The notes under the pieces were generated by a model. That model was not told where the DNA came from. It made no database searches and saw only the letters and a program-made list of their open reading frames with translations. The position numbers and the translations under genes are program-made. From Haliotis cracherodii (lineage: Eukaryota): a DNA stretch of 64,000 nt. The stretch covers positions 17,422,001 through 17,486,000 of the forward strand of contig NW_027266267.1 of the NCBI RefSeq assembly GCF_022045235.1. The letters run 5' to 3'. Positions 18,980-64,000 of this stretch are shown here, in pieces; the stretch's first letter is position 1; each line of letters opens with the position of its first letter.

Positions 18980-19894
18980 TTACTTGTTTCCACAGTCAGG
19001 ATCTGAAACCGCATCACATATATTGAAGGCCAGAAACGTAATTTCATATGTCACATTAGTATTTCAGAATGTGTCAAAAGAAACAATAATACATAGTAAA
19101 TGAATTATCAGGGCTGAGGAGGACAAACAGGCTACTGTTTGAAACTACTTCTGGTATACAATATGATATGCGAGCTATCATATTCTAAGTGGTGGTTACC
19201 TTTAGGTTGAGCGTCGCTGTTCTGGTAAGGAGATGAGCTGATGGACTCGTAAGATGCAGGAGCGGCTTCAGTCATGTCTTCGTAGGTACTTGTCTCTGCT
19301 TTGGGCTCGACTGAAAATATGACTCGTAACTCATTTCCAAAGAACAAATTGAAATGTTATAGACTCGTCTGAATGTAACACAACGTTAAATAGCATTCCT
19401 ATAAGCTGACAGTACTGAGTTTACGATAGACACCTGTTATGTATAGAGAGTGTCAAAGTATCCATCTACCATTTGTATTTTCATAAATCTTCAACTGTGT
19501 GTAATGTTGGTTTTTAGACGTCTCTGTATCCATGCTTGAGAAGTGTGCTGGACTGTTGATTTGATCTGTAACAAATCAATATGAACATGTAATAAAGGTA
19601 TCAGCGCGGAGTAGGCACAGGCATATTCGTGGCACAGGCACAATCTGTCTGACCGACAATGTTGACTTCAACCTACCCAAGGATGAATATCCTATGTTTT
19701 CCAATTCTTCAATTTCAGGATTTCTCGTGCTACAAAAGTAAGAAAAATCGTTTTTTGACAATCAATAAAGGAAAGGGCCACCTTCATATATGATTTTTGT
19801 TTCTGATTAAAAAGGACATTTACCTTATATCAAAGGACATTATTTCAAAACGTTTTATTCATTCATGAAGTGTACCTTTTTTGTGAAGTAGTTG
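18980..19894 (-). CDS. Gene D cytoplasmic exons (19, 53, 96, 111, 23 nt)
   Basis: ATTSQK-STRNPEIEELENIGYSSL-DQINSPAHFSSMDTETSKNQHYTQLKIYENTN-VEPKAETSTYEDMTEAAPASYESISSSPYQNSDAQPK-DPDCGNK*. Confidence 0.88.
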
Positions 19895-22800
19895 CTGAAA
19901 AATAGAGACTTCATATATAGTACACTGTAATGCACATATTACAAATGAGAATGTGAAATGTTAGACGTTAATGACTAAATAAAACAACATACTTCATAGA
20001 AGCAGTTACTGGTGCACTACAGTTTATGTTGTTATTGATTCTATATACATTCCCAAACTGGATGTGCTCATTCACTTTTACACACATCATTCATGTATAA
20101 TTATTGACGTCACTTTGAAAGGAAACATCCCGTCTGTAAATATCACCACACCACTTCTGATTCTACCTGTAATAATGTTACGAGGTAAAAAAGAGATTTG
20201 ACAATATACCTTTCAAAACGTTTCCAAACCTGAATCCATGCCTATAGAGGACCGTCAGAACTAGTCCCCCTATCAACAAGGTGAGAAGGAGGGTTCCTAT
20301 TATGCTTCCTGCTATTACACCTGCCATGTTATAATCGGCATTAAGCGGTTGTTGTTTTAGGGGACCTGTAGTATAAAATGAGAATCGCATGAAAGTATTG
20401 ATTATTTCATATTGTGAATATTATTTCATATATTGAAGATGTGAAGCCGCCGATCTACCGTCACTTTTTGGTGGCTGATTAGCGTTACATCATTTTTTTA
20501 AATTGTTTTGACGAATGAGTGAAACACAACAGATGTGGTGAACATTATTTTGGGGGGGATTCGTGGCAATGCTGTCAACTCGTGGCATGACCAAGGATCC
20601 CTGACTTTGGACAGACTCTATCCTCTATTCATATTTTGATGAGGGGGAATTAATCTCTCCAGAAACAGTAAAAGATACCCACAACTGACATTGAATGTCC
20701 TGACATCAGAGAGATTGTATGTCCCATACTGCCACGCCCCCAGACACTGACACTGCTGACTGTTCTGACTCCTGCTGACAGTGAAGGAGAGAGTAGATGT
20801 CCTGGTCTGACCACTGTCACTGACCAATGCTACTCCAGTCCCCGGACAGGACCACGTGATAGTAGCTAGAGGATTTCCTCCTGTCACCGAGCAGCTGATA
20901 GTCTCCCGGTCTCCTTCAAACATCAGAGTCTGAAAACTTGTGATAGAAGGAGGGACGGGTGGGGGGTCTGAAACAGGAACAACCTAGACGACTTCTATAA
21001 ATGACAATGCATGAAGTAAGAGATGCAACAGTGAGGACTGACTATATAAGACTGAACGTATCACAGTAAACCTTCTTAGTTTATCATCATATCGTAAACA
21101 GAGTCACAACATGATGTCCAGGCGTTGCAGGGAGGAAGAGTTGTGCATGAAGATTCAGTTTTGTAACTTCTAAAGGAACTGATAAGTTCCCGAATGTTCT
21201 GGATAATTGGAAAACATCTTTGAACACTCACATTTGACATCCAGTGACACAGAACCAGTGTGTGTTGCCGATGTTCTGGTGTTCCTGACCTGACATCTCA
21301 CGGCTGTCTTGTCTTTATTAGGCTTGAAGGTTAGAGTTTGGGACCACCTGGTAGAGGACCTTGACACAAACTGTGTGTTGCCACCTACAGGTGTTCCATC
21401 ACTGTAGTCCCAGATGAAGGTCGGGTTGGGATAAGCGGTGGTAGTACAGGTCAAAGTCAGGTTTCTGTTCTTGAAAACTAAACTGCTGTCTGGCATTGTG
21501 ACGTCAACCTGTTCTGGTCCGACTGGAAAACGGAATATTGAAATATATAACTACTGTGTTGCCTGATTACTGCGTAGCCCTGACAGACATATGTCAACGT
21601 CCACGGAAGCTATAGCATTGCTACATCAGACCGTATCTGAACACTAACTCATACATATCTACTACATTAAACATTCAGTGTGGCTGCCTACAGACACCAA
21701 TCTCCAATCTGGCTCTGTGAGATTTAACGTACTTTTACAAAGCCTCTCGCGTAGTTCTGATATATAGTCTACTGTCACAGATGCTCTACCATTGCTCTGA
21801 TGGACCATGTCTGATCCCCTAATAGATACATTTCTGCTAACGACGAACCTGTAGTGTAGCACTGTTAGACTTGGACTCCTTGCACCAAACCTGATAGATA
21901 CATGTTTACTTACACAAAACCTTCATTTCGGTTCTGTTAGACTGTGTACATTCGCCAAACCCCCAGTGTGTCTATGTTAGGCTATGTCTACTTACACCAA
22001 CCCTCCAGTGTGGCTCTGTTGGATTGGGTCTACTTACACAAAACCCCAAGTGTGACTTATTAGACTATGTCAACTTACACCAACCCTCCAGTGTTGCTCT
22101 GTTAGACTGTGGTGATGTCTGACCGTTGATGTTTTCAGCCTGACAGTGAATGCTCCTCCCCTGGTCACTCCTACTGACAGTGAATGTAATGGAGCTCGTT
22201 GTCTTCACCAGGACACCAGATGTCGTCTCTGTGCTGACAGTAGGAGTGGTTCCTGGTGGCAAGGTCACCCATGTCACAGAAGAAGTCGGGAAGCTGGCTG
22301 AAGTCACACAGGTCAAGGTCAGCGGTTGACCCGCCACTTGTCCTATCTCCTCATTATCAGCGTTGATGTTCGTCAGTGTCACAGAGTTTACTGGGACTGT
22401 AAGACGTGAATACATTGACATTTGGCATCAATTAGCTGTCCTTTATATATCTAAACATTGCCTATTGCCTATGATGTTTTTTTCTACCATGACATGTTGG
22501 AATCCTGAACTTGATTGGTCTGCCAGGTGTGTGGAATCTACATGCTTTTGCTGATGAGTGAATTGCCGCAAAAGGCACTATTTCTCAGAAAGCACTTCTT
22601 ACACAAAACCGACGAGTAGGAAATGTATATTTAGCACTAGTAGATTACAAACTGTGAGGTCGTGTTTGCCGGTTCACAGTGTTTTGGCATACGTGTCAGT
22701 AGAACAATATAAACTCATAAGAGTGGTGTATTTGTTTAGAACTAATTGCTACAAAGGTTGCCTCCCTCAGTTTCCCCAAATGAAACTGTATGGATAATGA

Positions 22801-25373
22801 ATACAGGGAATCTGCTAGAGGGTTGCGCTTTCCTATTTTCGAGAGAGTTAAATACAGGAAGGTATGGTTTGAATTACAAAAGCAGGATTACCATCAATGA
22901 ACTATATCAACATGGTGACAACTTCCATTCAACACAACTAAAACATTACACTTGACCAATGCAACGTAACTCATCACTTTACCTTTACATCTTTATTACG
23001 AAAAAAATAACACTGAAACTATAACAGGTTCATCTCCTAATTCTATAATTGTTATTTGTATTAAAATCGACCGTTTAATATATTGTGAATGCTAATACCG
23101 ACACAACTATGTGTGTCTCAAATCAAGGGATACTTACAAACATTGAATTCCACCCAAGTATGTGTATCATTTCCCATTTAGTATTCATTGACATGGTCAA
23201 CGTTTCCCTTGTTCAGGCATAAAAGTAAAATAGATCCCGCTTCGTAACTTCTTATTTCTGGCATCTATGTCATATTTTAAACGCACTGAATGAGAGAGAT
23301 TCAGTGCGACATACACAGATAACCATTTTGAAAAGTATTGTGAACATCCAAGAATTTTCCAAGAACTCTTTTTGCTTTCGGCGACGTCCAATTTTCTTTT
23401 TCTTACTGCTACAATACGGGCCTTGAGTCAACAACAGGTACACTTGGAGTTGATGTGCACTCACCAGGGAACTGTATTGTATTTGAAGTGACAGACTTAG
23501 TGTACGTGGGCGGGTCAAAGGAGTCGTGTTCCACACTGACAGTGAGAGACACCTGTCTGTTGTAGAGACTGGCTGTGTTTCCTGGTAGTAACAGTGAGTT
23601 GGTTGTCTGGACCTGGCCTGATGGACATGATCCCTGGGAGGAAGATGTACTGCTGGGGAGGACGCCCCTCACACTCTGTAAACATATAGGATGGNNNNNN
23701 NNNNNNNNNNNNNNNNNNNNNNNNNNNNNNNNNNNNNNNNNNNNNNNNNNNNNNNNNNNNNNNNNNNNNNNNNNNNNNNNNNNNNNNNNNNNNNNNNNNN
23801 NNNNNNNNNNNNNNNNNNNNNNNNNNNNNNNNNNNNNNNNTGTCCGTTTCACGAACGGACGGACCAATGACATGAGCTCATTTTGTCGATGCCGAGGTGT
23901 AAAGGACCATGCATCATACTAAATCATGTATGTTGATGAAATCAAATATACAAGATGGTCTACGACGTCAAGATGGACATACAGTTGCTACCTGATGGTA
24001 TCTCCATGTGATGACGGCGGCAGGGGGAGCACACGGGGTGGTCACTGTGACGGATATGTTGTTTTGTGGGGTCACGGAGGACCGGAGAGAAGTCAGTTGT
24101 GGAGAAAATGTCACAGAGCTCCAGTCCAAGACAGCTGGTAGGAAGGAATGATATAATGATAATCCTGATAGAGATCTTTCAACGTCATCAAAAGCCACAC
24201 AGCCCAACCACTCAAGAACAGATATCAATACAGGAACACACTATACGGCCTCTGTGAATAATTCACCGTAGACACCTTGCAATATAACTTTCTGAAGTTG
24301 TCAACAGTTCTGTCATCACGTGACAAACATGTCCATACTGATATTTTAATGGCGAATTATCAAATATTAACATTCTAAACTGTTTCACAACAATGTAAAT
24401 ATTTTTTAGATAGTTAACACTTGTACTATCTTCCCAGACACATGAAACTGAGCGTTCAACATGAAACTGAGCATTCAGCATAAAACTAAGAGTTAAACAT
24501 GAAATTTATGTGGGGAGGGGGAGGGGGGCAGCATCACATGCCTCGACGTTTGCCTGTATATTGACACGAACCATGAATAAGTTGAAATACTTTGGGGGTA
24601 AACAATGTAGCATTAATATTGTCTGATGTATGACCATGCAGAACATTTACTTATAATCTTGACACATATGAAAATAACACATGTATACTCTGGTTGTATT
24701 AGGGACCACAAAGCTTAGAATTATCAACCATTATGAATATGGACATGTTAGTTATCTTCAACCACTGAATTAATAGCGATTCATAAACACACTCTGCAAC
24801 CAAAATACATAAATTCATAGGGATTCATTAACACGTGCTTATGAAATAGTATGAATCATGCAATGAACTCTCTTTTCTTATGATTATGTAACAGTTTGTG
24901 TCAATTTTGTTTACATGCAAGAAATGTATTTTAATCAGTTTCTCTGTAAGTTTAGATGTGCTGTCTACTCTCGGATATAGTCGATTTACAAATACGTTTC
25001 TTTTCTTATCCACAGTTATCATGTTTTCATTTTTCAGCAAGTGATTAAAAAAAATAAAACCCGCCTCCAAACTGTGACAGCGTGATGGTATTTGACACTG
25101 TGGTACCAACAGTACATCTCCATATCCCGCTGTCTCTGGTGGAATCTGGTGATGCGATGTCAAGAGTCAGGATCCTGGATGTACTGTCCAGACTCACAGA
25201 GTATCCTGAGACAGGTGTCCGACAGGTGCCTGATGATGTGCAGGCTCCCTGGATAGAAGTATCCTTATAGAAGTAGACAATTCCACTGAGAGCCGCATCT
25301 AGTGTACAGGTGATGCTGAAACTGACACCCTCCACAGGAACACGTCTGTTGGTGGCAAGTACTGGAGCTGACT
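18980..25373 (-). CDS. Gene D: type I membrane IgSF receptor (5 Ig, TM, tyrosine-motif tail); leader exon not securely located
   Basis: Exons 25065-25373, 23992-24134, 23465-23675, 22079-22396, 21232-21522, 20683-20967, 20210-20365, 19876-19894, 19677-19729, 19470-19565, 19200-19310, 18980-19002 join in frame (about 671 aa plus leader). The Ig1 donor is non-canonical GC. Confidence 0.85.
20210..20365 (-). CDS. Gene D transmembrane exon
   Basis: CPLKQQPLNADYNMAGVIAGSIIGTLLLTLLIGGLVLTVLYRHGFRFGNVLK. Confidence 0.9.
20683..20967 (-). CDS. Gene D Ig5
   Basis: 285 nt; TISCSVTGGNPLATITWSC...QCQC. Confidence 0.9.
21232..21522 (-). CDS. Gene D Ig4
   Basis: 291 nt; LTLTCTTTAYPNPTFIW...VRCQVRN. Confidence 0.9.
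21680..22110. repeat. About 41-bp degenerate tandem repeat built from the gene D Ig3 exon 3' end and donor
   Basis: ACTTACAC at 21908, 21990, 22032 and 22073. Confidence 0.8.
22079..22396 (-). CDS. Gene D Ig3
   Basis: 318 nt; LTLTCVTSASFPTSSVTW...IHCQAEN; paralog of B Ig3. Confidence 0.9.
23465..24134 (-). CDS. Gene D Ig2-like domain, split across two exons (23992-24134, 23465-23675) by a phase-0 intron
   Basis: Phase 1-0 and phase 0-1 exons with canonical sites; ISVTVTTPCAPPAAVITW...GSCPSGQVQTTNSL...VSLTVSVEH. Confidence 0.72.
25065..25373 (-). CDS. Gene D Ig1 (V-like, extra Cys pair, WRC)
   Basis: FSITCTL...GACTSSGTC...LTLDI...DSGIWRCTV; donor AG|GCGGGT. Confidence 0.83.
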
Positions 25374-27299: not shown

Positions 27300-28137
27300 A
27301 AAATTAAGTATCTCATTAAAACTGAAACGTTAAAAAATCACAAAAACAAATAATTCTATTGTCGAAAAAACAACACTCTCCGGAGGGCTTATGTGATTCA
27401 CGTGATGCGATCACAGCCTGGCACCGTCGTCTCATGCTCCCAATAAGTGTCTGGATGGTTGCCAAGGGAAGATTGACCCAGTAAACACGACGATCTGTGA
27501 AGTCTAGACAGTATCCAGAATTCATCCGTGAACAGTACTGGTTTGTCCAGTAAACGAGGTCTTGATCAGCCCAATACAAACGTGCCTGCTTGTGATTTCG
27601 GGCTAGTGGGGTGCGAATGCAGATGGTGTCTTGCTGCAATCGGGAGAAACCTGTCTTCCTGCTGTGTGGTGGAACGCTGTCGTCCACGTGCATGTCACTG
27701 GGTAGCTGATACAAACATGTGGTTTCGATTCCATGCCCTGCTGATCACACGTTGGCTGACACCAAAGACGTTTGCAACATGACGTTGCGTTGACCAAGTT
27801 TTAAGCATGCCAATGCATGTGCCTAATTCGTCGGTCGTCAAACGACGTCCTTGACATTGAGGGATACATGTGCATTCAGTTGTTGCATTCAGTCCTAGTA
27901 ACAAATGTTGTTGTGCTCTCTGGTAATGGTGTACAACGATTATGTCATTATACATCCAAACACAGGTGTTCAAGCACCTCGTGCACAGTGAATGCATGCC
28001 TCTGTCCTTTCCTCATGAAAGTGCAGTCCTATAGGGGTTACCCAATCATTGTGTACCAGAATATTTCAATCTGTATTTGTTGGATTTAATTTTGATATCA
28101 TTTAAACTTGATCCTATGCATACTTTGAGTAGTATAT
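27300..28137 (-). mobile_element. Highly degenerate, internally deleted Tc1-like transposon
   Basis: Fragments IGML..QRHVANVFGVSQ..ISR (HTH) and LIGSMRRRCQAVI; terminus ...GAGTAGTATA. Confidence 0.72.
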
Positions 28138-31270: not shown

Positions 31271-32422
31271 TCAGTAGCGTGTATGGCCACCATGTGCGTT
31301 GACAACTGCCACACAACGCCTCCGCATGGACCTTTTGATACTTGTGAACACATGACTGGGAAGACGACGCCATTGATGCTGCAAAATGATGCAAAGATCT
31401 TGCAAATTCTGTGGTTGGTTCTGGAGAGTACGCAGACTTCTGACAAGAGCATCCCAGTCGTGTTCGAAGGGATTGAGGTCGGGAGACCTTGACAGTCAGT
31501 CAGTGACGTTGACTCCCGCATTCTGAAGGAAATTCCTTGTCAAAATTGCTGTGTGGGGTCTTGCATTGTCGCGTTGGAAGATCAAACCTGGTCCATGTGC
31601 TGCCATAAAAGGCAGAAGTTCTGGCGCCAGTATCTGGTCGCGGTTAGCAGCAGCTTTGAGGTTGCCACAGATGACAAGAAGCCTGGAACGTGCATTGCCA
31701 CAGAAAGCACCCCACACGATGACACTTCCGCCTCGAAATCTGTCAACTTCCTGTACACAACACTAGGCGTAACGTTCATGACGGCGCCTCCACACCCTTG
31801 CCCTACCATCAGCAAATCGAAGATTAAATCGGGATTCATCACTGAAGACGACTTGATTTCCATTCCTCTGAGTCCATCGTAAGTGTCGATGTGCCCAATA
31901 TTGACGTTGACGTCTGTGTAATTGAGTCAGAATCGGCCCGCAGTATGGCCGTCGTGCTTGAAGGTGTGCAGTTCTCAGATGGTTTCGAACAGTTTGCGCA
32001 CTCAGTCTACCCCTAAACAGTTCAATTCTGGTTGATGTAGCCGTCAAAAATCGGTTACGGAGGTGACGTAAGACAATCTGACGATCCTCTGCATGTGACG
32101 TCACACGTGATCGACCAGGCCGAGGGCGATCAGCGGTTGTACCCGTTTGCTGTAGACGCGTCTGTAAATCATAAACAGTCCGTCGACTACAACCCATCGT
32201 CCTTGCGACTTCAGCTACGGACGTTCCCGCCTGCAACATGCCGATGGCACGTTCACGTTGCACATTTGAAAGGCGTGGCATGACCAATGGAAACACTTTT
32301 GCCACTATAGTGCTGTGCACATGATTTTGATCGATTCACCTGCACAAAAACGGGCCCACAATGATAACTGGTCAAAATATTAAAATTTAAGGATTGTGAA
32401 GTTTTTAATTTGGTTCAGTATA
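31271..32422 (-). mobile_element. Tc1 (DD34E) transposon with a full-length 337-codon transposase frame (31271-32281) carrying two nonsense codons
   Basis: MPRLS..RERAIGML, FSDESRF, DNARPH-34-E (SPDLNPFE), GGHTRY*; a single reading frame throughout. Confidence 0.93.
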
Positions 32423-38716: not shown

Positions 38717-41700
38717 ATATATTTAACATCTCAGGACTGACGTATAGATGCATATATTTTGTTATTTATGATATTATATTGAAGTTAAGGTCAACTGACG
38801 TATCAGTTAGACCACACTAGGTATGCTGAGTAAGTAACATTATTCCACTTCAATACATAACACTGTTATTCGTCATTATATGCAGTGTCAATATAAAATG
38901 TTATTCTGACTGCAAACATGTTCTTAATACTGCGTCAATTTACTTACAGTTATACGGATAGTTTGTAACATACCTTTCATGGCATGTCCGAACCTGAAAC
39001 CCTTTCTGTAGAGGACCATCACAACAATTCCTTCAATGAACAAGGCAAGAAGCAGAGTTCCAACAGTTGATCCCACGATGTCCTCTGTACAAGTAGCATC
39101 GAGTTGCTGATGGTCTGTAGGATCTGCGTTATAAAAGTATAACGAGTGGTTGTCGTGTATTTACTGGTTTGCAGTAAATCGGTAAACATTACCACATTCA
39201 TTTTCCAACCCAAGTAAGCACATGTTGAACTTATTGATAATTGTTTATGCACTGCAGCTTTAAACTTTTTATATTCTACGATGAACCCGCAACGACAACA
39301 TATCACATAGCAAGGAAATGTTGACGCACCACAATACTTACTATAACTCATATATAAAACACTCAGTTTCTGAACCAGAGTCGATTATTTACAGGTTGCA
39401 GCCATATAAGTGAAATATTGTTGAGGGCAGTGCTATGCAACAAACAACAAATAGATAAACATGCTAATAAACACACAGACAAATATATATGTTGTTTAAA
39501 TAACATTGCCTGTGGCATTGTTTAGTGTGCCGTTAAAAAAAAAACCCAAACAGGCATGCTAAAAATAGGTATGTGTTGCTACAATACATATTTTTCTTCA
39601 TGTAATGTTGTTGATTATGAGAAATTGAGATCCCACGTCAGTGATAATTACCCCCAGGAGTCACAGTTTCCACAATGGCGAAAGATGAACTTTTAGACAA
39701 GGCATTTCTACTATGCAGACGGAAAAGGTGAATATCTCCTGACGTTAGGCCCGTCACTTCCACCACTTTCACCTTGCCAGTGTCATCATACGTGTTGTAC
39801 GCGGTCCACGTTCTTGTAACAAACTGAAGATATTCAAGCATGAAAGACTGGGGATGTCCACCATTGAACCCAGGTTGCCATGACAACCACACCGAAGACG
39901 TTGTTACATTTTCTAGAGATTTGAACTGTGTAGGTGTCCCCGGAGGCCCTATTAAAACAACGTAATACCATATGTTTGTTCTGAGAAACTCTGTATCAAG
40001 ATACTCACAGTGAACATCATGAAGTGAAAAGTCATACTTTCAGAACACACATAAAATGGTATATTGATAAAATAGGCTATAGTAGTAGTAATTATTAATA
40101 ATTGATTATATGAAAACTGAATGGACGAATAAGAATTGGATGTTCACCTTCGACCTTGAGACTGACAGTATATGCCACCGACCGGCCTACACGAGTGTCC
40201 ACTGTAAGACTGTAGTCCCCGAAGTCCTGCTGTTGGAGGTTAGTAAGGTGTAGTCTGGCAGTGACTGAGATGTCTGAGACAGGGCTGGAGGAACCAGTGA
40301 GGTCCTGGCTGGTGCTGGTGGTTCTACTCCAGGTGAATGTAGGAAGGGGGTAGGCCAGGACTGATACAGACACAGTGACGTTACCACCCAGTCTAGCGGC
40401 GTATTTGAGTTGCTGGGGAACTGATTCATCAAGTCGAGGGGGAACTGGTTAAATGTACAAGACAGACGGCAATTAATACACTTGCTTAAACTTATGTATA
40501 GATTCGAGAACAAATAATAAACTGTCCGCACGTGTACGAGTGAAAGAACATACTTAGATGATATCCCTATCGTCCTATCTAACACGAAACAAAACGAAAA
40601 GGTAGGCATTTCCTGTATATACGAGGACTGGTAAAAAAGTTCTAACAAACAAAACGAACAATTGTGAAAGTGTTTTTAATTGTATTTTTCAACTTTATCT
40701 CCCTGGCTTCAATACACTTCTCATATCGATAGTGAAGCTTTTCAATTCCAGTCAGGAAGCAGTTTTCTGAAGCCAACCTGACAAAAACATTCACGGCAGC
40801 TTTGAGGTCATCGTTGTCATCATAGCGCTTCCAACGAAGGTGTTCTAGTTGTTTATGAAACATGTGGCATTAACTGGTGCAAGGTCTGGTGAGCATGGAA
40901 ACTCTTCCAATCCACATTGTCACACAGCAGCCTTTGCAAGTCAAGAGGTGTGAGAAGAGGCATTGTCATGAAATAGTAGAACTCCAGCAGTCAGCCTTCC
41001 TCACTACTTTTCTTTGATTGAGTCTTTCAGGCCATGAAACAAGTCAGCATAGTAGTAATCGGTAATCGTCTTTTGACCGGTAATCAACAAGGATCACAAC
41101 ATTTGCATCCCAGAATACTGTGGCCATAACTTTCTTCACTGATTTTGAATTTCTTGGGTGCTGGAGAAGTGGAATGGGGCCATTTTGTGGATTGACGTTT
41201 TGAATTTGGATCAAAGTAGTAGACCCATGTCTCATCACCCGTGACTAATCTCTTTTTTAATGTGACGAAATCTTAAATTGTCTTAAGATCTGAATTAAGA
41301 AACGTTGGCACCCAATGGGCAAATATCTTATTCATCTGTATATGTTTATGAATAATAGTTTCAATGGATCCATAATAGTTTCAATGGATCCATGTCTGCC
41401 TCAAGTTCAGCAATGGAAACACGTCTAACTGACAGTATACGTTTTTCTATCTCCTTGATTGAATCTTCATTGATGGAGGTTAAGGGATGTCCAGATGTAG
41501 GGTCATCATCACGGCTTGTTCTCCCAGCCTTAAACATAGCTGCCCAACGTTTGACAGTGGAATATCTAGGGCACTTATCCCCATACACTTGTGACTTGCG
41601 GTCATGCATTTGAAGGAAAAACTTGATGACTGCTCGGTTATTTCCATTTGTGTGTCCATTTGGACACCTATCACGTTCAACAGACTGTCACTAACATACA

Positions 41701-45926: not shown

Positions 45927-45994
<68 letters not shown>

Positions 45995-47729
45995 ACGTAC
46001 ATTCATAATAACAAACTTGTCACCACAACAAAGGCAATGACATCCATGTGTCTGGTATCTAACACATGGTATTCCTGGCATAACTGGAGGTGACCCATTG
46101 ACTCTTCTATCCATAATAATGTCCATCATATACTTACACAACACAGAGGCAGTGACACTCACTTGTCCAGTACCTGACAACCCATTCACTTCACACCTGT
46201 ATGTCCCTGCATAGCTTGATGTCACGTGACTGGCAGGCAGCTGGATGTCCAGGGAGGAGGTGTAGTCACCAACAAACACGCCCTTGTTCTGCCAGGAGTC
46301 CAAGAACACAGCTGTCTGAGCAGGCACTGATCCACTGGCTATCAGCACTGCAGAGATGCCCTCCCCCTTCCTCCAGGTGTACCCGGTAACAACATCCCCC
46401 GGTGTCACAGTGTAGCTGCATCTCAGTCTCAGAGCCTGCTGGTTGGGTATCCCTGCACCTCCTGACCCGGATACTGTCACTGCTCCCTCAACACCTGGAA
46501 ATAAACGCGCAAAACAGGGACCATTCTAAAATATGACTTTTCCCGATGTTACTCTAGAGAGGATGCAAAATGCAAGTTGGGCTCCTCGCTGCCTTAAGCA
46601 GTATTTTAGTTATTTCAAGGCTACAAAGATCTGTGTGTGACAAGTCTCTGACGAGCACGGGTATGATGTTGACAAATCAAGATTCATAGTAAGAGCTTAT
46701 CCGGTTTATCTTCATTTTTTAACATTGTCCTTATAACAGCTNNNNNNNNNNNNNNNNNNNNNNNNNNNNNNNNNNNNNNNNNNNNNNNNNNNNNNNNNNN
46801 NNNNNNNNNNNNNNNNNNNNNNNNNNNNNNNNNNNNNNNNNNNNNNNNNNNNNNNNNNNNNNNNNNNNNNNNNNNNNNNGTTTGGGGATGGTAAATATCC
46901 TGCATTAGGAATAAACATTGCATTTAGCGAGCCTTGGCGACTAATAAAGTAAGCTACTCTAACCCTAGTCTATGAGACGTCTCGGCCACGGTCAGACGTT
47001 GTTGACAGTCGGCCTAACCTGTCATAACGTTAAGAAGTGTAGTCAGATGTACAAACAGCCTTAAAGCGAAACAGGGTAACAATTCAAACATATTTCGGCC
47101 AAATCCAAATATTTTAATTTGTGGAGCAAGCCGCAGAGGTCTACAAGCACAGATATGGCTACTGATCCCGCTTGGCTAGGCCTCATGCCCTCGCAAAATT
47201 GTGTCGAAATTTATATCTCCAAGTTACCAAAACATGCCTTAGCTACGTCACAGTAAGACACTGATTTTCAGTATATTGGACTGTTCTTTTGATAATGAAA
47301 GCAATTATCTCTGTAGTTTATCAAGATTCACGATTGTTAAATCTGACTCGATCGCCGAAAGACGAATGCGACAGTGAAAGTAGTCCCTACTTGACCTTTG
47401 ATATTTGCATCTCTATCCGCATATGACCCCAACGGATATCGTTTTTATCCCTTGGCTTTATCCTGCCGATAAACCTACCCATTATATGATAAATATATAT
47501 GTATATATATATACTACTTTACTGTAATATATACTCATATATATTCTGTGATAAATGGAATTAGCACATCACAGCTGCAATCTTTCCTTGATAATAGTAT
47601 GTAGTATATACAGAAAGAAATGCTAATTGCTGATACTTGTGCAGTGTTTCTTTTAATCTTAAAACCTGACATACCTTTCACGAGGCTAACTGCAAGCACA
47701 ATCGTTGCTGCTCTAGGAAGGGACGCCAT
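34748..47729 (-). CDS. Gene C: type I membrane IgSF receptor (signal, 5 Ig, FN3, TM, ITAM/ITIM tail), about 759 aa
   Basis: Exons 47675-47729, 46138-46494, 44493-44750, 43968-44252, 42303-42581, 40148-40444, 39652-39948, 38974-39123, 38517-38535, 38033-38085, 37854-37949, 36172-36282, 34748-34770 sum to 2280 nt, an open frame with all junctions GT-AG. Confidence 0.9.
35283..35431 (+). mobile_element. SINE family 1 copy
   Basis: Same family on the plus strand, with ACTC tail. Confidence 0.75.
35910..36080 (-). mobile_element. SINE family 1 copy with an expanded (GAGT)n tail
   Basis: Same family. Confidence 0.75.
36320..37702 (+). mobile_element. Degenerate Tc1-like transposon in a gene C intron
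   Basis: RAIGMLETG, GGGSVLVWG, FQDDNSR, GRITHY*; imperfect TIRs near 36320 and 37680-37702. Confidence 0.85.
38974..39123 (-). CDS. Gene C transmembrane exon (not in the ORF track)
   Basis: DPTDHQQLDATCTEDIVGSTVGTLLLALFIEGIVVMVLYRKGFRFGHAMK; homologous to the B and D TM exons. Confidence 0.88.
39652..39948 (-). CDS. Gene C fibronectin type III domain
   Basis: 297 nt; GPPGTP...VWLSWQPGFNGGHPQSFMLEY...VTGLTSG...FRLHSRNA. Confidence 0.9.
40148..40444 (-). CDS. Gene C Ig5 (cysteine-less I-set-like)
   Basis: 297 nt; VTVSVSVLAYPLPTFTW...DFGDYSLTV. Confidence 0.85.
40620..41810 (-). mobile_element. Degenerate mariner element in a gene C intron
   Basis: TIRs TACGAGGACTGGTAAAAAAGTTCT / AGAACCTTTTGACCAGCCATCGTA with TA ends; WVP, GDETWV, KVMATVFWD, HDNA and SPDLAP motifs. 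Confidence 0.92.
42303..42581 (-). CDS. Gene C Ig4
   Basis: 279 nt; VTLRCQIDSYP...GNYSCTATN. Confidence 0.88.
43968..44252 (-). CDS. Gene C Ig3 (near-duplicate of Ig2)
   Basis: 285 nt; core essentially identical to Ig2. Confidence 0.88.
44493..44750 (-). CDS. Gene C Ig2
   Basis: 258 nt; IDCSTYTTPGNPP..YTW...GGNYTCTASN. Confidence 0.88.
45275..45546 (-). mobile_element. SINE-like interspersed repeat, family 2
   Basis: TTTAACGCCGCACTCAGCAATA..CCAGCTATATGACGGCGGTCTGTAAATAATCG..GTCGCCT.TTACGACAAGC. Other copies at about 1510-1625, 2655-2856, 8945-9175, 12670-12815, 12980-13105, 18035-18282 and 62995-63231. Confidence 0.75.
45929..45996. repeat. (AC)n microsatellite
   Basis: Seen directly in the sequence. 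Confidence 0.95.
46138..46494 (-). CDS. Gene C Ig1 (V-set-like)
   Basis: 357 nt; LRLRCSY...YTWRK...YAGTYRCEV. Confidence 0.9.
47675..47729 (-). CDS. Gene C signal-peptide exon MASLPRAATIVLAVSLVK
   Basis: Phase-1 donor AG|GTATGT. A TTTTCAG acceptor about 13 nt upstream of the ATG implies a non-coding first exon. Confidence 0.78.
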
Positions 47730-52763: not shown

Positions 52764-53655
52764 TTACTTGTTCCCATAGTCAGGATCTGAAACTGCATCT
52801 CATGGAATGAAGACCCGGAAACTAATTTCAAAGTTGTCAAACGATGACAGGGTAAACGTGTTGTACACCAGGACACAAGAGGGTGGGATTTTGAAACTTA
52901 AATTACTTCTGGTATACAATATATAATGCAAGATTTTAATTCTTTTCAGGGGTATAAATATTCTGAATAATGGTTACCTCGAGATTGACCGCCGCTATTC
53001 TGATATGGAGATGCGTTGATAGACTCTGGAGGAGCTTCTGTCATGTCTTCGTAGGTACTGGGCTCGACTGAAAATGTGATTCGTAACACATTTGCAAAGA
53101 ACAAATTCAAATGTTACACATCCTTTTAAACGTAACACAAAGATGAATAGCACACCGATGATCTTTCAGTACCTTCACTGAGTTTATCGATTGAGAACTG
53201 CTATAGTATATAGAACATCAAAGTATCCATCTACCGTTTGTATTTTCATAAATCTTCAACTGTGTGTAATGTTGTTTTTCCGATGCCTCTTTATCGCCTG
53301 GGTACTCAGCTGGACTGTTGACGTGATCTGGAACGAATCCATATGAACATACAATAACGGTGTTAGGGCGAAGTAGAAACAGTCATATTTGTGAACAAAA
53401 CAATCTATCTGACGAACATTGCTGACTTCAACTTACCCAAGGATGAATATCCTATGTTTTCCATTTCTTCTATTTCGGTATTCCTTGTGCTACAAATGTA
53501 AAGTAAGGTCCGTGTATGGCATTTTATAATGGATAGGAACATCTTCAATGTATGATTTGTTTTGTGATTTTAGAGGACATCTACCTTATTACAAAATAAA
53601 TTATTTTAAAACGTATTATTCATACATTTAGTCTACCTTTTTTGTGAAGCAGTTC
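52764..53655 (-). CDS. Gene B cytoplasmic exons (19, 53, 93, 90, 23 nt)
   Basis: GTASQK-STRNTEIEEMENIGYSSL-DHVNSPAEYPGDKEASEKQHYTQLKIYENTN-VEPSTYEDMTEAPPESINASPYQNSGGQSR-DPDYGNK*. Confidence 0.88.
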
Positions 53656-56600
53656 CTGCAAAGAAGAGAATGCATTACATAGTACCCTGTAATACACACA
53701 TTAAACATGTTGCAAAGGGATAATATGATATGTGAAACCTTAATGACTTAATACAAGAAACATCGACAATTTGTGCTATTATTAATTCCATATACATTCC
53801 CGAACTGTATGTTCTCATTCTGGGTCAGTGATGATTTTGATTCGTACGTAACTTTGACGCATATTATTCATGTATCTACTGAAGGCACACTGAAATGAAA
53901 TATCGCCACATCATGTTTTCACTCAACTTGCAATACTGTTGAAAGGTAAACATGAGATTTAACAACATACCTTTCATGATGTTTCCAAACCTGAACCCCT
54001 TCCTATAGAGGACAATAAGAACTAGTCCTTCAATCAGCAAGGTAAGAAGAAGGGTTCCTATCGTACTTCCTGCTATTACACCTGTGATGTTATATTCGGC
54101 ATTGAGTGGTTGCTGTTTCTTTGGACCTGCAGTATAAAATGAGTATTTTATGAAATTAGTATTGACTTCTCTTTTACTGAACACAGATTTTTGTATTTTG
54201 ATCATGTGATGAGCTTGATAAAGGTGTCATTTACATCAAACAGGCTTTATACTTCAAACTTTCTGAATGAGGGGGAGTTACCAATTGTACCTATCAATCC
54301 CTCCAGAAACAGATAAAGGTACTCACAGCTGACATTGAATGCCCTGACATCAGAGAGGTTGTATCCTCCATACAGCCATGCCCCCTGACACTGACACTGC
54401 TGACTGTTCTGACTCCTGCTGACAATGAAGGAGAGAGTAGATGTCCTGGTCTGACCACTGTCACTGACCGATGCTGATCCAGTGCCGGGACAGGACCACG
54501 TGATAGTAGCTAGAGGATTTCCTCCTGTCACCGTGCAGCTGATTGTCTCTGGGTCTCCTTCAAACATTAGAGTCTGAAATTTTGTGATGGAAGGAGGGGC
54601 CGGCGGTGGGTCTGAAAAAGGAACAGCCATGATAGTAACTATACACAGAAATGCATAAAGCAGTGGAGAACATGACACTATCTGGAACATTTTACAAACT
54701 GGCTTAGTTAGTGTTATCCACAACAAAAAGAAGTTATTTCATCAAACAGTGTCCACTATACATGAAAGAGTCGGTGGTTATATTATCTTTATATATCACT
54801 TTGCTCGCTCCCTATGTTTACAATGATATACAACCTTCACATGTGCTTCAAATGAAAATCTGAACTGCTCTTAACAAACTGGGCACACTAATGAACTCTC
54901 ACACTTGACATCCAGTGATGCAGAACCAGTCTCGGTTGCTTTGGTGTTTCTGACTCTACACCTCACAGCGGTCTTGTCTTTATTTGGCCTGAAGGTGAGG
55001 GTCTGTGACCACCATGTAGAAGATCCTGTCACAGACCCCGTGGTGCCCCCTACAGGTGTTCCATCAATGTAGTCCCAGGTGAAGGTCAGGTTGGGATAAG
55101 CGGTGACAGTACAGGTCAAGGTCAGGTTTCTGTTCTCTAAGGCTACAGTGTTGTCTGGCTTTGTCACATCCACCTGCTCTGGTCCGATTGTAATACAGAA
55201 CAGTTACCTTTGACATCAATGTTATCTTAACCTCTCACTGCATTTGTAGTACTGCTTTGACAACATGTCATATCCGATATAGTATGATTTGAACCTACAT
55301 GAACACCTACGTCAATTACTATTCATCGTAGTTCAGTCTCATGAAGGAGTTGATCTCGCTGTCTAACTGACGAAAATACTCACTTTTCACCTATGATATT
55401 TTGTCTTGAGTGCCATATTACTGGATTGACTAAATGACTCCCTGACTGCAAACAACTGTATCCTCCCAGTGCGACAATAAGGCAATGGCATGTATAGAAC
55501 AGTAGTTATTGACTGATTGACTGATATCACATGAATGACATACGAATGTGTGACAACAGAGAGTTACTCACACCACACTCCCACCCGGGCACTGTCAGAC
55601 TGTACTGGGGAGGGGGTGTGGATGTTGGTGGCTCTACAGTAGACTTTGTGGCCCAGGTCACTCCTGACAGGGATAATGGTCACGGTACTTGTTGTCTGGA
55701 CAACACCTGATTGGGATGTGTGACCATTGGATATCCCACTTGCCAACGGAACACTGTTCTTGAACCACGTGACAGTAGCAGCAGGGTAACTGGAAGAGGT
55801 CACACAGGTCAAGGTCAAGGGTTGACCCTCAGCAGCTCCTACTTCCTGGTTGGCGGATGTGATGTTTGTGAGAGACACGCTGCTGACAGCAACTGCATAG
55901 AAATTGATTTAATCACAACTAGTGTATATATCTGTCATATTCAATAACGTAATGTCGAAGGCATAAAGGTAACTATCTACAATATTTATGATGTGGAGGG
56001 AACATTGCTATTATATTACTTACTGTCAGGATAGGAATACGTGGAGTTGACACTTGTCTGTGTGTTGGATGCCTGGCAGTAGTACAGGGAGTTCCTACTG
56101 GTGCCTGTCAGCTGGTAGTTGATGGTGGCTGTCCAGCCAGTGTCTCCCTCCACTGCTACTGGGCTGGTGGCCACACTCATCCCGTCTCTGTACAGCGTCA
56201 TGGACGGCGGTGGATTGGAGACAGCAGCACAGGATATAGACATTGTAGTTCTTGTTATGGTAACATTGCTCAGAGGAACTGAAATAATAACATAGTTTTA
56301 TAAAGTGTTGGTATCTATTTAAGACGACGGTGGGTTGGAGACTAGTGCATGTGAGACTGATTTCGGGAACTGAAATATCAACATAGTTTTATGAAGTATT
56401 GTAATGAGTTGGAGAAACAGGTGATATATGTTGTAGGTCTAGTCATGGTAACAATGTTCCGGGAACTGACATAATAACATTATCTTTGGTGTATCTATGT
56501 AGGATGGTGGGGCAAAACTGCAATATCAGTGGTTAATATTGGGAAAGGGAGGTCAGTCTAATTTCAAACGGGAGCTATCTCCGTTGTTTTCGTATTTGCG

Positions 56601-59600
56601 AGCAATGGCGTCACCGACGCTGTACTTTGTTGGTCCAGCTATTAAATGCCCAGCTTATCCCTACGGTAAAACGTATTCTTAATTAAATGTTTAAATGCAT
56701 TATATTTATGTTTCCATCCGTACACCTTCTGAGATTGGTTTAGTGCTGATAACCATTTTCCAAAATGTGGGCCCACATCTTTTCCGTCATCTTTGGTGAT
56801 CGAAACAAGTGGGCCCACATTTGTATTTCGCCTAGCTTCGTTAGGTTGTTTCGTTAGTTCTGATAATCAATCCCTAAATGTGGGCAGACGTTCTTTCGTC
56901 ATATTGCTTGCAACAGGAGGGACCACATTTATTAATCGCGAAATTCTACTTAAATATTGATAATCATGGGCCTACATTGTTCCCGTCATATATGGTGATC
57001 GAAACAAGTGGGCCAATATTTGAATATCGCCTAGTGGGTAGACGTTCTTCCGTCATAGTGCAACAGGAGGGACAACATTTAAAAATCGCTCAGCTTTATT
57101 AGCTTGGCTTACTTATAACCATTTTTAAAAAATGTGGGCCCACATTGTTCCCGTCTTATAGTGATCGAAACAGGTGGGCCCACATTTGTAAATCGCTGGG
57201 TTTCATTGGGTTGACAAAGTCATTTCAACTAGTGGGCTCACATTTGTCATTACTTTTCATGGGTATGTGACATTTTTTATTATTCATATTTTGTAGTGGA
57301 AAATGAAGGAAAGAGTAGATGTCCTGGTCTAACCTGGGACGAAATTATTTCCCCTAACGTCGGAAGGCACAACAAAGGGAGGTAACCTGGTTTCGTAATG
57401 GGTATATAAGTACAAGCGGAAAGTTGAAACTTCATTCTCAGGTGCGGTGCAGTCGAGGCTGGCTATATCAAACATGTTCGGTTATCTATGCTGCCGATTG
57501 AAGTACACATCGGTTGAATCTAAATTTGTTATTATTTGTGTGTGAAGTAGATGCAGCTGTCCATATGATGATCAGGATGTTATGCGTTGCTTGCAAGTTG
57601 TGCTGGCGAGCCATGATAATACGTTGTGAGATGGATCAGTGTCCATAGTTAAAATCTGGAACAGTTGGTTGCGAGAGTATGGATTTGGGATATACTCTGA
57701 TGAGTATTCGCTGACGAGCCATAAGAATACGTGATAAGGCGTCGATGCCTGTGTATATGTATACGTTGCAAATATGAAGCATAGAATATATTCATGTAAA
57801 TTACAGTTGGTTGGTTGATGGTCATGATGCTGGTGATGCAGCCGATGTTCATGATAATGTGAATACTTGTTGAAGAATAAACTGCGGTCAGTCAGTGCAT
57901 CGTACAGTATCCCAAAATGTTGTAGTTGTGTATTTTGTTGTGTTAAGGGGGAGAAGGAGGAGAAGTTCGTAATGCGGGTTCGTTTACATAGACATATTCT
58001 CAACAACAAGTGCGTTTAGTTTCCAATATGGGCCCACCTATGATTTTTCGATTAGGCAAACGGAGTTAGCTCCCTTCTCGAACCACCGATAATGCGGTTT
58101 CACCGATGGTGGTGATGGTCACCTGACATACTAACCTGATACATCCATTTGTAAATGGTTACTCCCTGCATACTGATAGTCATACTGTGGTTTAAGCAAA
58201 CGTCCACAAAACATAGCTACCTGATACATGCATTTGTATCGGGTTACTCTAAACATAATGAAAGACATACTGTGGTTTAAGCAAACATGAACCCACTTAA
58301 CTGATACATCCATTTGTATCAGGTTACTCTCTGCATATTGAAAGTCATACTGTAGTTTAAGCAAACATCCACAGAACATACTTACCTAATACATTCATTT
58401 GTATCGGGTTACTCTATACATTCTGAAATTCATACTGTGGTTTAAGCAAACATCCACAGAACATAGCTACCTGATACATCCATTTGTATCGCGTTACTCT
58501 ATACATACGGAAAGTCATACTGTGCTTTAAGCAAACATTCACAGAACATAGCTACCTGATACATCCATTTGTATCGCGTTACTCTGTACATACGGAAAGT
58601 CATACTGTGGTTTAAGCAAACATCCGCAGAACATACTTACCTAATACTTCCATTTGTATCGGGTTACTCTATGCATACTGAAAGTCATACTGTGGTTTAA
58701 GCCAACATCCACAGAACACGGTTACTGATACATCCATTTGTATCGGGTGACTCTATACATACTGAAAGTCATACTGTGGTTTAAGCAAACATCCGCAGAA
58801 CATAGCTACCTGATACATCCATTTGTATAAGGTTACTCTATACATACTGAAAGTCATACTGTGGTTTAAGCCAACATCCACAGAACACGGTTACTGATAC
58901 ATCCATTTGTATCGGGTGACTCTATACATACTGAAAGTCATACTGTGGTTTAAGCAAACATCCGCAGAACATAGCTACCTGATACATCCATTTGTATAAG
59001 GTTACTCTATACATACGGAAAGTCATACTGTGGTTTAAGCAAACATCCCCAGAAGACGGTTACTGATACATCCGTTTGTATCGGGTTACTCTATACATAC
59101 TGAAAGTCATACTGTGGTTTAAGCAAACATACACAGAACATACTTACATAATACATCCATGTGTATCGGGTTACTCACTGCATATTGATAGTCATACTGT
59201 GGTTAAAGCAAACATCCACAGAACATACTTACCTAATGCATCCATTTGTATCGGGTTACTCTATACATACTGAAAGTCATACCGAAGTTTAAACAAACAT
59301 CAATAGAACATAGTTACCTAGCACACTTATGTTTAGTTGGTTGCTTTGTCTGCCACCAAACTGATAATCACATCTCCAGCTGAGTGTGTCTCTGCCGTAT
59401 ACGGCGTTGTTGATGGTGAGGGTGTAGTTGGTGGAGCTGGGGCAGGAGGTGGTGTAATCAGTTTGGACAGATGGGGAGGTGGAGCTGCAGCTACCCTGGC
59501 TATTTCTGTAGAATGTAGTTCCATTCTGCCACTGTATAGCTGTATGTGAAGCTTCTCCTGTGTAACACATCAGAGTACAGCTTCCCCCTTCCAGCACAGA

Positions 59601-60448
59601 ACCTCCACATGATGACGTCAGCTGATAGTTCTGGGCAGTAACTGAAACCGTAGTAAATATGTTGTGAGATGTTACATTGAGGTTCACAGAACGATGTCTA
59701 ACCCGATGTTCCGAGATATTGACACAAGCATTATGCTTGTAAGCTACTGGAAAAGAACAACTTGCGAACAAAATCAGAATGGACTATTATAGGCAAAAAT
59801 ATCTGCACTTTTATCTCTTACTACACGTCTGATGTCTCATTCATACACGGTTTGGGGCAACATGCGGTTCAGCTGTCTCTGACACCCCAATTTGCTTTGT
59901 AGAGTTGCATCCCTTTGCCGTGCCAGAAACATACGATCGTGGGTTCGAATTCCAGTTCACCCTCATTATGTCTCTCACACCTGCGCTCGTGGCTTTCACC
60001 AAAATGAATGCGTAAGACATACATTCTGGCTTACCTCCTTCATCAAGCTGACACGCTGATCTGTAAGTGAAATACTGTTATTAAACGTCTGAGACCTGCA
60101 TCACTTCAGGCTTTCCTCCCACATTAAGGTGACACGCCGTGATATGACTGGAACACTGTTAAAAGCGGCGTTAAACCCAACCCACTCACTCACTCACTTT
60201 ATTATCGACATGCAGAGGTAGATGTACATAACCACTGACATATACGTGCAATCTACTTCCTGGTTCTATTTTCAACCACTGTATGTGTGGGAACTGAGTG
60301 TGAGATTCATTTCGTTACCCCTGATGCAATAATATTAACACACATAAACCACAAGCAGTCAGATAGTGTACTTACCCACGTGTTTGTGACATATGTCCAC
60401 CAAGAGAGCTCCAACTGTGAGGATGAGACGGGTGTACAGCATGGCCAT
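52764..60448 (-). CDS. Gene B: type I membrane IgSF receptor (signal, 5 Ig, TM, tyrosine-motif tail), about 658 aa; exon 5 acceptor mutated
   Basis: Exons 60376-60448, 59318-59641, 56024-56278, 55572-55892, 54903-55187, 54327-54611, 53971-54126, 53637-53655, 53437-53489, 53235-53327, 52978-53067, 52764-52786 sum to 1977 nt, an open frame ending in TAA. All junctions are GT-AG except the exon 5 acceptor (AA). Confidence 0.88.
53971..54126 (-). CDS. Gene B transmembrane exon
   Basis: CPKKQQPLNAEYNITGVIAGSTIGTLLLTLLIEGLVLIVLYRKGFRFGNIMK; hydrophobic helix followed by a basic stop-transfer segment. Confidence 0.9.
54327..54611 (-). CDS. Gene B Ig5 (membrane-proximal)
   Basis: 285 nt; TISCTVTGGNPLATITWSC...QCQC; nearly identical to gene D Ig5. 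Confidence 0.9.
54903..55187 (-). CDS. Gene B Ig4 (open frame, but the acceptor reads TTACAA rather than ..CAG)
   Basis: 285 nt; LTLTCTVTAYPN...FTW...VRCRVRN. The paralogous exon in gene D (21232-21522) has the canonical acceptor. Confidence 0.75.
55572..55892 (-). CDS. Gene B Ig3 (C2/CD80-like)
   Basis: 321 nt phase 1-1; LTLTCVTSSSYPAATVTWFK...VYCRATN. Confidence 0.9.
56024..56278 (-). CDS. Gene B Ig2 (short C2-like)
   Basis: 255 nt phase 1-1 exon; SISCAAVSNPPP...LYYCQASN. Confidence 0.85.
56570..58074. mobile_element. Probable non-autonomous DNA element with 16-bp TIRs and internal GTGGGCCCAC palindrome repeats (gene B intron 2)
   Basis: GGGAGCTATCTCCGTT ... AACGGAGTTAGCTCCC (15/16 inverted match); no clear TSD. 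Confidence 0.55.
58130..59320. repeat. 84-85-bp tandem repeat, about 14 copies, abutting the gene B Ig1 donor
   Basis: CATCCATTTGTATCGGGTTACTCTATACATACTGAAAGTCATACTGTGGTTTAAGCAAACATCCACAGAACATAGCTACCTGATA units; includes a 169-bp higher-order duplication. Confidence 0.95.
59318..59641 (-). CDS. Gene B Ig1 (V-like, 6 Cys, WRC F-strand)
   Basis: TTTCAG acceptor, GTAAC donor, 324 nt; CTLMC...IQW...YTLTI...DTLSWRC. Confidence 0.88.
60376..60448 (-). CDS. Gene B exon 1, signal peptide MAMLYTRLILTVGALLVDICHKHV
   Basis: ATG, hydrophobic core, phase-1 donor G|GTAAGT. Confidence 0.8.
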
Positions 60449-60509: not shown

Positions 60510-60524
60510 TATAAATACACCCGG
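60510..60524 (-). promoter_or_regulatory. Candidate TATA-like core promoter of gene B (CGGGTGTATTTATA)
   Basis: About 60 nt upstream of the ATG, with CCAGT (Inr-like) about 25 nt downstream. The same 14-mer occurs upstream of gene C at 49082-49095. Confidence 0.5.
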
Positions 60525-63231: not shown

Positions 63232-63327
63232 CTAACTATGTTTTGACTCAAAGGAAATGAATGTCATATGTTGCACGTGTTCCTTGGTCTGTTACTGCAT
63301 CTGATATCATGAATTCTTCCTTCTTCG

Positions 63328-64000
63328 TTACTTATTGTCATGGTCAGTACCTGAAAAGTATAGAACTACATGTAAGTAAACACAGATTATATGACAGGTT
63401 TTATATCACTCACAATAACATGACATGCTAAACGTGTCACATTAGGATTGAAAAGAAGACATATGCTTCGGTTTAATGCTTCTGTACATGCCCACAGTTT
63501 GCCCATGGCAATGACATACGATTCCAACCAGCAAGAGTGTTTCATGTTTTGGTTACCTTGAAAATGTGCTCCAGTGTTCTGGTATGGAGATGGTTTGATG
63601 GACTCATAGGTCACAGGGGGAGTCTCTGTGATGCCTTCATAGGTGCTTGCAACAGCTGCAGCATCCGCTGAAGATATAATTCATTACGTATTACAACAAC
63701 AAATCCGAATCACAACTCCCTTCTTCTAACTAGCACTTCAATATTACCTACACTGGAATGCTTAAACTTAAACAGTATTGGGGAAAAATGCAAAATCTAT
63801 ATCAACCTTTTGTATTCTCATAAATCTTCAACTGTGAATACGGTTGTTTTTCTGATTCCTCCAAATTTGAATACTGGACTGGTCCATTTATTTGATCTGA
63901 AACAAAACAATGTGAAAATATTGTATTGATTTTAGTGCAAAACAGTTCCATATATAATGGTAATTTCAACAAAAGGGAAACACCCAGTACCTTGTACATA
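63328..64000 (-). CDS. Gene A (partial): 3' cytoplasmic-tail exons of an IgSF receptor paralog with two ITAM-spaced tyrosine pairs
   Basis: Exons 63807-63896 (DQINGPVQYSNLEESEKQPYSQLKIYENTK), 63557-63667 (ADAAAVASTYEGITETPPVTYESIKPSPYQNTGAHFQ) and 63328-63350 (GTDHDNK*), all AG/GT bounded with phase-1 junctions and homologous to the tails of B-D. A possible end of the preceding exon lies at 63984-64000 (YKVL, positionally equivalent to YSSL). The rest of the gene is beyond the window. Confidence 0.88.

Follow-up and report, generated by a model that had tools for sequence, protein, structure and literature searches.

In vertebrates, FCRL, CD22/Siglec, PECAM-1, CEACAM1 and the teleost LITRs combine several immunoglobulin (Ig) domains with long cytoplasmic tails that mix inhibitory motifs of the immunoreceptor tyrosine-based type (ITIMs), sequences resembling the corresponding activation motifs (ITAMs) and YxN sites of the Grb2 type, and their genes lie in tandem arrays that evolve by birth and death. 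Skipping of tail exons alters the motif content of CEACAM1 and PECAM-1. The activating partners of KIR, LILR, SIRP and CD300 possess a short tail and a basic residue in the transmembrane (TM) segment, which pairs with an ITAM-bearing adaptor. In molluscs, Ig receptors with ITIM or ITAM tails have so far been studied singly, in oysters: CgIgR (five Ig domains and an ITAM) binds bacteria and recruits Syk, with Syk-ERK signalling (PMC6994640), CgNCAM1 (three Ig domains, fibronectin type III (FN3) and two ITIMs) recruits SHIP2 and damps inflammation (PMC11841013), and CgIgIT is named as an inhibitory receptor in a third report (PMC11999971). In Hydractinia, the Alr family consists of 41 clustered genes of the Ig superfamily (IgSF) that are spread across 11.8 Mb or more and show exon shuffling and alternative splicing; an Fn3-like fold occurs in their products, and some tails contain ITAM or ITIM motifs (bioRxiv 10.1101/2022.03.04.482883). 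In this study, we analyzed a stretch of 64,000 nucleotides (nt) from the black abalone Haliotis cracherodii (contig C4, 17,422,001-17,486,000; hereafter the window), which contains four IgSF receptor genes, A to D, sharing one cassette of small tail exons, and we compared them with the above systems.

In a six-frame scan, the tail motifs turned up at four places, in genes lying head-to-tail on the minus strand, and a reading of the splice sites in the DNA gave a shared tail cassette with coding lengths of 19, 53, 90-96, 90-111 and 23 nt, bounded by AG acceptors and GT donors in compatible phases throughout. This arrangement agreed almost to the base with the original prediction, which had been made from the letters alone and had also assigned a common TM exon to the three genes that reach it within the window; TM exons were indeed found for genes A, B and C, whose reading frames were open in every exon (Table 1). 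The last coding exon (23 nt including the stop codon) was present in all four genes and was traced from the loose end of a spliced contig. Introns were in phase 1 past the TM exon, phase 2 past the 19-nt exon and phase 1 past each of the next three exons. Because phase 1 occurs on both sides, omission of the 96-nt or the 111-nt exon from a transcript leaves the reading frame intact, and two NCBI isoforms (P0044 and P0049) do lack the 96-nt exon. Genes C and D corresponded to NCBI models P0016 (660 residues) and P0035 (751 residues), which carry the same tail; no exact NCBI model was found for gene B.

Exact matches of the window in the protein database were Haliotis cracherodii entries on a 45.3-Mb contig, which bears out the earlier guess of a molluscan host. 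Comparison of a profile of the 96-nt exon with the whole genome, a count of the cassette that the original prediction had proposed, revealed 55 distinct matches (expectation value, E<1e-3), all of them at 12.4-17.9 Mb of C4 or on the 1.28-Mb scaffold C38 and nearly all within 5.5 Mb of one chromosome. A few of these matches contained stop codons, and the tail loci on C4 were arranged as blocks whose orientation alternated from one block to the next. The tail cassette is not a chance arrangement, since its 31-residue exon recurs in the genome with matches as strong as E 7e-19. Genes A-D are four members of a multigene family of about 55 loci, and the cluster of single-pass Ig receptors foreseen from the window is far larger than the part seen there.

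Each member of this family is a type I membrane protein that has a signal peptide, a variable module at the N terminus, conserved Ig domains close to the membrane, a single TM helix and a disordered tail some 125 residues long. The ectodomains contained five Ig domains, or several Ig domains and one FN3, in proteins of 650-900 residues. Ig-fold repeats, signal peptide and single TM helix, the features of an IgSF type I receptor, occurred together. Ectodomain typing of the window genes and 20 further loci revealed three recurrent types: type A (five Ig domains, the second split across two exons), type C (five Ig domains) and type B/D (V-set plus other Ig domains, in most cases with an FN3). Pfam matches to Ig_3, Ig_2, I-set, C2-set_2, V-set and fn3 were obtained with the window exons and with P0016, P0035 and P0033; Ig1 and Ig2 of type A had no Pfam match. 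In the AlphaFold2 (AF2) model of the type A paralogue P0002, Ig3-5 formed confident beta-sandwiches and the TM helix was placed at residues 551-570, with moderate confidence for Ig1, low confidence for Ig2 and a disordered tail past the helix (confidence score, pLDDT, below 30). A sister group of seven-Ig genes (P0051 and P0052) possessed a different TM helix and a much diverged tail; P0053-P0055 carried the same extra Ig domains, in models that stop before the TM helix and tail. A genome search with P0051 returned only matches of 94-98%, scattered over 160 kb, and P0051 may be a chimeric gene model.

With an ITIM defined as cytoplasmic [S/I/V/L]xYxx[I/V/L] and an ITAM as Yxx[L/I]-x6-8-Yxx[L/I], candidate motifs of both kinds were identified in the tails, as the original prediction had supposed. 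Among 38 proteins from four Haliotis species, three tail tyrosines were conserved in 100% and three more in 89-97%, and the tyrosines were the most conserved tail positions, above the surrounding residues. Two flavours of tail, A/C-like and B/D-like, could be distinguished in 29 loci. The proximal ITIM consensus in the 53-nt exon was present in 11 of 12 A/C-like loci, compared with one of 15 B/D-like loci (gene B itself), and B/D-like tails had Arg at -2 of this site; a YxxM site was found in 8 of 8 A/C-like loci. On the other hand, an ITAM with x6-8 spacing was found in none of the 12 A/C-like loci, compared with 12 of 17 B/D-like loci (YxxL-x7-YxxL in the 96-nt exon). Half of the B/D-like loci (4 of 8) had a second ITAM-spaced pair in the 111-nt exon, and 8 of 8 had a distal ITIM consensus. 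Both ITAM-spaced pairs occurred in gene D, and the spacing in gene B was x9. At least one YxN site was found in every tail seen. The one cassette was common to unrelated N-terminal modules, and the diverged tails of P0051 and P0052 kept the same order of tyrosine motifs, which argues for constraint on the motifs themselves. The residue in the middle of the TM helix was Glu in 14, Gly in 23 and Val in one of the 38 proteins (Glu in B and C, Gly in A and D). Proteins of the B/D type had a cysteine or two immediately outside the membrane, through which dimers could be covalently linked.

Searches of the protein library revealed no tail relative outside Haliotis: the tail profile gave 10 significant matches among 1.84 billion representative proteins, and the TM segment and tail of P0002 retrieved 42 proteins, all of which in both cases were from this genus (H. 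cracherodii, H. rufescens, H. rubra and H. asinina in the second search). The closest non-abalone relative of the whole protein was an oyster model without the tail (27% identity over 62% of the query). The queries were single exons and, as full-length proteins, the database models P0016, P0035 and P0002. The 42 Haliotis proteins carry a dozen automatic names (turtle-like, nephrin-like, CD22-like and others), which NCBI derived from the best generic Ig matches. Literature searches found no paper on the abalone tail family, in keeping with the earlier suggestion that the system was uncharacterised.

Like the abalone family, the oyster receptors CgIgR, CgIgIT/CgIgIT2 (with ITIM) and CgNCAM1 are molluscan type I proteins whose ectodomain has three to five Ig domains and which possess a single TM helix and an ITAM/ITIM tail. 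However, they are described as single genes, whereas the abalone genes form a cluster of about 55 copies, and the abalone cassette had no detectable oyster relative in the protein library searches, the Cg receptors being compared by description. In bringing ITIM, ITAM-like and YxN sites together within a single long tail, the abalone proteins are most like FCRL and CD22, and weak structure matches included FCRL5 and CD22 (domains 2-3 of the latter at E 1.5e-5). With FCRL, CD22, PECAM-1, CEACAM1 and LITRs the family shares only generic Ig similarity and no tail homology, and the likeness is convergence, not orthology. The Hydractinia Alr cluster is similar in scale, but its tails are too diverse to align and have motifs in some members only, whereas the abalone cassette is conserved across about 55 genes. 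Pfam does not recognise the Ig domains of Alr, but most abalone domains are ordinary Ig_3, I-set or C2-set. No cnidarian protein was returned by the whole-protein library search, in which no Alr sequence was used directly.

The genes are transcribed, and their splicing follows the models. Contigs of four public runs, which came from three studies and bore three organism labels, were placed on positions 52850-58849 of the window, and GT..AG joints at 53327/53437, 53489/53637 (four runs, three studies), 54126/54327, 54611/54903 and 55892/56024 matched the gene C model exactly (93/53, 53/19, TM/Ig5, Ig5/Ig4 and Ig3/Ig2, respectively). The joint between Ig4 and Ig3 (55187/55572, three runs) was given with TT..AC ends, and a single 629-base contig spanned three gene C exons. 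Thus the exon models of gene C, for which a check against transcripts had been proposed, agreed with both the contigs and P0016. Many contigs were 95-99% identical to the window, so that some must come from alleles, close paralogues or sister species. At the last exon of gene C, two in-frame acceptors lie six bases apart (52787-52792), and the upstream one, with which Val-Ser is added, is used in the RNA contigs as well as by NCBI; gene A is without that upstream AG. Deep contig coverage in all four runs and an unusual GC skew were also observed within a gene C intron (56450-57250), where the coverage probably reflects an expressed repeat from another genomic place.

Comparison of the ectodomains revealed a gradient away from the membrane. 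Between the A and C proteins, identity was 87% in Ig5, 74% in Ig4 and 44% in Ig3, and no similarity could be detected for Ig1 or Ig2; between B and D it decreased from 84-88% in Ig4 and Ig5 to 26% in domain 1. Thus, the N-terminal Ig domains are as different as the original prediction had stated, but each subfamily of the window has close copies elsewhere (72-96% identity), so the Ig1 difference seen here is one between old modules. With regard to the question whether Ig1 is DIVERSIFYING, the ratio of non-synonymous to synonymous change (omega) among five type C paralogues was 0.34-0.66 for Ig1 and 0.29-0.46 for Ig2-5. Ig1 was the least conserved domain in the best cross-species pair (84%, compared with 91-96% in other domains), and in type A it was 70-76% identical where Ig2 and Ig3 were 93-97% identical. 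Ig1 is therefore the loosest domain but not hypervariable, and its omega never exceeded 1. The rapid Ig1 diversification proposed earlier is weakly favored, with Ig1 omega remaining below 1 among close paralogues.

Per exon, omega ranged from 0.2 to 0.9. A quick tree of 41 full-length proteins (excluding rows shorter than 560 residues and the chimeric P0042) showed two deep clades, A+C and B+D, with H. asinina in four subclades and species-specific bursts, a pattern that indicates birth-and-death evolution. Between gene C and its copy at C4:17533421-17543420 (L037), synonymous divergence (dS) was zero in Ig1 and Ig3 and 0.19 in Ig4, and seven of 160 residues differed in the Ig1 reading frame (which extends past the exon), all by non-synonymous changes. 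The mosaic divergence of this pair suggests recent gene conversion, perhaps accompanied by selection. The family evolves by tandem duplication and domain mosaicism under purifying to relaxed selection, and gene conversion probably shapes it as well.

We consider it probable that the genes of the window belong to an abalone-only receptor family with tyrosine-signalling tails, for which haemocyte recognition would be the likeliest setting. In such a scheme, ligand binding would cluster the receptor and Src-type kinases would phosphorylate the tail tyrosines; SH2 proteins could then be recruited, with the ITAM-spaced pair binding a Syk-type kinase, the ITIM sites binding SHP or SHIP phosphatases and the YxN sites binding Grb2/Drk. 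The cell would thus receive mixed activating and damping signals, as with FCRL, CD22 and PECAM-1 or with CgIgR, CgIgIT and CgNCAM1 of oyster. These oyster receptors give the proposed signalling logic a molluscan precedent, for single genes unrelated in tail. By analogy only, haemocytes would most likely recognise microbes or altered self, and we infer an immune role of the family on this ground. A more far-reaching version is possible but remains tentative, namely that the 5.5-Mb region with its approximately 55 IgSF receptors may be an abalone counterpart of the leukocyte-receptor/FCRL-type complex, in which interleaved ITIM- and ITAM-biased tails would set haemocyte activation thresholds and the variable modules at the N terminus would follow pathogens, for example the withering-syndrome agent or abalone herpesvirus.

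Several observations weigh against a receptor family of this kind. By our estimate, an ITIM match is expected by chance at about 0.07 per tyrosine; since single matches may arise in this way, the argument rests on conservation rather than motif presence. Frame breaks were found at approximately one-fifth of the inspectable loci. In gene A, the donor after Ig1 (25063-25064) is GC, where paralogue L035 has GT, and this could be either a functional GC-AG intron or a first step of decay. The only NCBI model of gene A, P0001 (XP_071094649.1), is chimeric: it begins in the frame of the TM exon (20181-20390), lacks the exon of 19 nt and runs on to a partial Tc1/mariner-type transposase (3019-3273), 16 kb downstream, where it ends. 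The RNA status of the four runs was only a guess of the tool, and we took them as RNA-type because genomic DNA would not show such spliced joints. Finally, a Vibrio-induced haemocyte unigene of H. discus hannai named turtle homolog B-like (PMC11250055) was considered as a link to immunity, but it maps to XP_046336404.1, an accession absent from the members of the family retrieved here. The supplements of that paper contained no accession prefix of the family either, and the unigene, which could not be tied to the family, was rejected as evidence.

Much of the same material could be read in terms of adhesion. The products might act in cell adhesion or mark cell identity in nerve, epithelium or gonad, in the style of IrreC/nephrin, Turtle/IgSF9, NCAM or DIP/Dpr, with tail tyrosines serving adhesion signalling or endocytosis and without an immune role. 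The best solved-structure matches in the PDB were generic ones of this kind (MDGA1, CEA, contactin, Robo and SYG-2; E 1e-11 to 1e-17), the NCBI names agree with them, YxxL-type sites double as endocytic signals for AP-2 sorting (which also bears against a signalling tail), and nervous systems too have clustered recognition families. Nephrin/IrreC, Turtle/IgSF9, hemicentin, NCAM1 and VSIG10 resemble the abalone proteins in having Ig domains, FN3 domains and one TM helix, but domain number and length do not fit, the tail is unrelated and no one-to-one orthology was observed. About 55 young tandem copies evolving by birth and death would also be unusual for conserved adhesion genes. Instead of a single conserved orthologue of the nephrin/hemicentin kind, which the original prediction had named as its counter-case, we found a genus-restricted expansion, with no tail orthologue outside Haliotis and a best non-Haliotis match of only 27% in the ectodomain. 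Thus, we regard the adhesion explanation as unlikely, though worth keeping in mind.

The original prediction had favored paired immune receptors or an allorecognition system, that is, near-identical ectodomains on opposite tails or highly polymorphic self-markers. The two tail flavours do alternate along the array, and the type A ectodomain also occurs with the second class of TM helix and tail: identity between P0052 and P0002 is 93-94% for Ig2 and Ig3 and 27% for the tail, with Ig1 the most diverged domain in such pairs (70-76%). However, P0051 is possibly a chimeric model, and the flavours sit on unrelated N-terminal modules, which means that ligand-binding domains are not shared. All 38 tails were long, no short-tailed form was seen, and Lys or Arg never occurred in the middle of the TM helix, so pairing in the KIR/LILR sense was not borne out. 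Alr proteins mediate colony fusion, whereas abalones are solitary animals that neither fuse nor form colonies, which leaves allorecognition unsupported. A true paired or allorecognition system therefore appears quite improbable. Still less credible is a largely decaying array of duplicates without present function. Stops or frame breaks at some loci, the GC donor of gene A together with its lack of a full NCBI model, and the richness of the region in transposons would fit such decay, but exon frames were open throughout A, B and C, transcripts were spliced, omega was below 1 and the tail was conserved in four species, including the distant H. asinina.

Both assembly gaps in the window are intronic (Table 1). 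Across the gap in gene A, the two halves of Ig2 were colinear with P0002 with zero residues missing. Open frames of Tc1/mariner-like transposases were observed among and inside the receptor genes (27316-27997, 31763-32320, 36863-37255 and 41361-41609), and the third of these lies in the long gene B intron between the 96-nt and 111-nt exons, to whose length this Tc1-like insert contributes. An 85-bp minisatellite of about 14 copies (58126-59319) fills the intron after gene C Ig1 and stops at the exon border, each unit having a donor-like GGTAA on the gene strand. A 40-bp minisatellite (5027-7222; 44 copies, 90% matches) showed a strong negative GC skew and long spurious open frames.

Table 1. 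Coordinates of receptor gene features (window positions, except for the sister group)
Feature	Position	Strand	Remarks
Gene A Ig1 exon	25065..25373	-	No Pfam match; Ig-like B and F strand cysteines; GC donor
Gene A Ig2, first half	23992..24134	-	Phase 0 end, GT donor
Assembly gap	23695..23840		Within intron splitting gene A Ig2
Gene A Ig2, second half	23465..23675	-	Good acceptor, 19 bases past gap
Gene A Ig3 exon (C2-set)	22079..22396	-	Approximate borders
Gene A Ig4 exon	21232..21522	-	Approximate borders
Gene A Ig5 exon, membrane-proximal	20683..20967	-	
Gene A TM exon	20210..20365	-	156 nt; phase 1 at both ends
Gene A tail cassette	19894-19876 (19), 19729-19677 (53), 19565-19470 (96), 19310-19200 (111), 19002-18980 (23)	-	
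Gene B signal-peptide exon	47664..47729	-	Approximate
Assembly gap	46742..46879		Within gene B intron 1, between signal exon and Ig1 exon
Gene B ectodomain	Ig1 46494-46138, Ig2 44750-44493, Ig3 44252-43968, Ig4 42593-42303, Ig5 40444-40148, FN3 39948-39652	-	Approximate
Gene B TM exon	38974..39123	-	Start approximate; Glu mid-helix
Gene B tail cassette	38535-38517, 38085-38033, 37949-37854, 36282-36172, 34770-34748	-	
Gene C signal-peptide exon	60377..60448	-	NCBI model P0016
Gene C ectodomain	Ig1 ~59642-59319, Ig2 ~56291-56024, Ig3 55892-55572, Ig4 55187-54903, Ig5 54611-54327	-	
Gene C TM exon	53971..54126	-	156 nt; Glu mid-helix
Gene C tail cassette	53655-53637, 53489-53437, 53327-53235 (93), 53067-52978 (90), 52792 (RNA and NCBI) or 52786 (original prediction) to 52764	-	
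Gene D last three coding exons	63896-63807 (90), 63667-63557 (111), 63350-63328 (23)	-	Rest beyond base 64000
Seven-Ig sister group	C4 near 14.02-14.04 Mb and 17.64-17.65 Mb; scaffold C38		

What is new here is a whole clustered and fast-duplicating family with one shared multi-tyrosine tail in two systematic motif flavours. Haliotis is a genus of conservation and aquaculture concern, and the black abalone is critically endangered, with disease among the causes. The finding corrects a patchwork of misleading automatic gene names and supplies candidate resistance loci. It also provides a gene set with which to ask whether activating Ig receptors are balanced against inhibitory ones in invertebrates, as they are in the innate lymphocytes of vertebrates.

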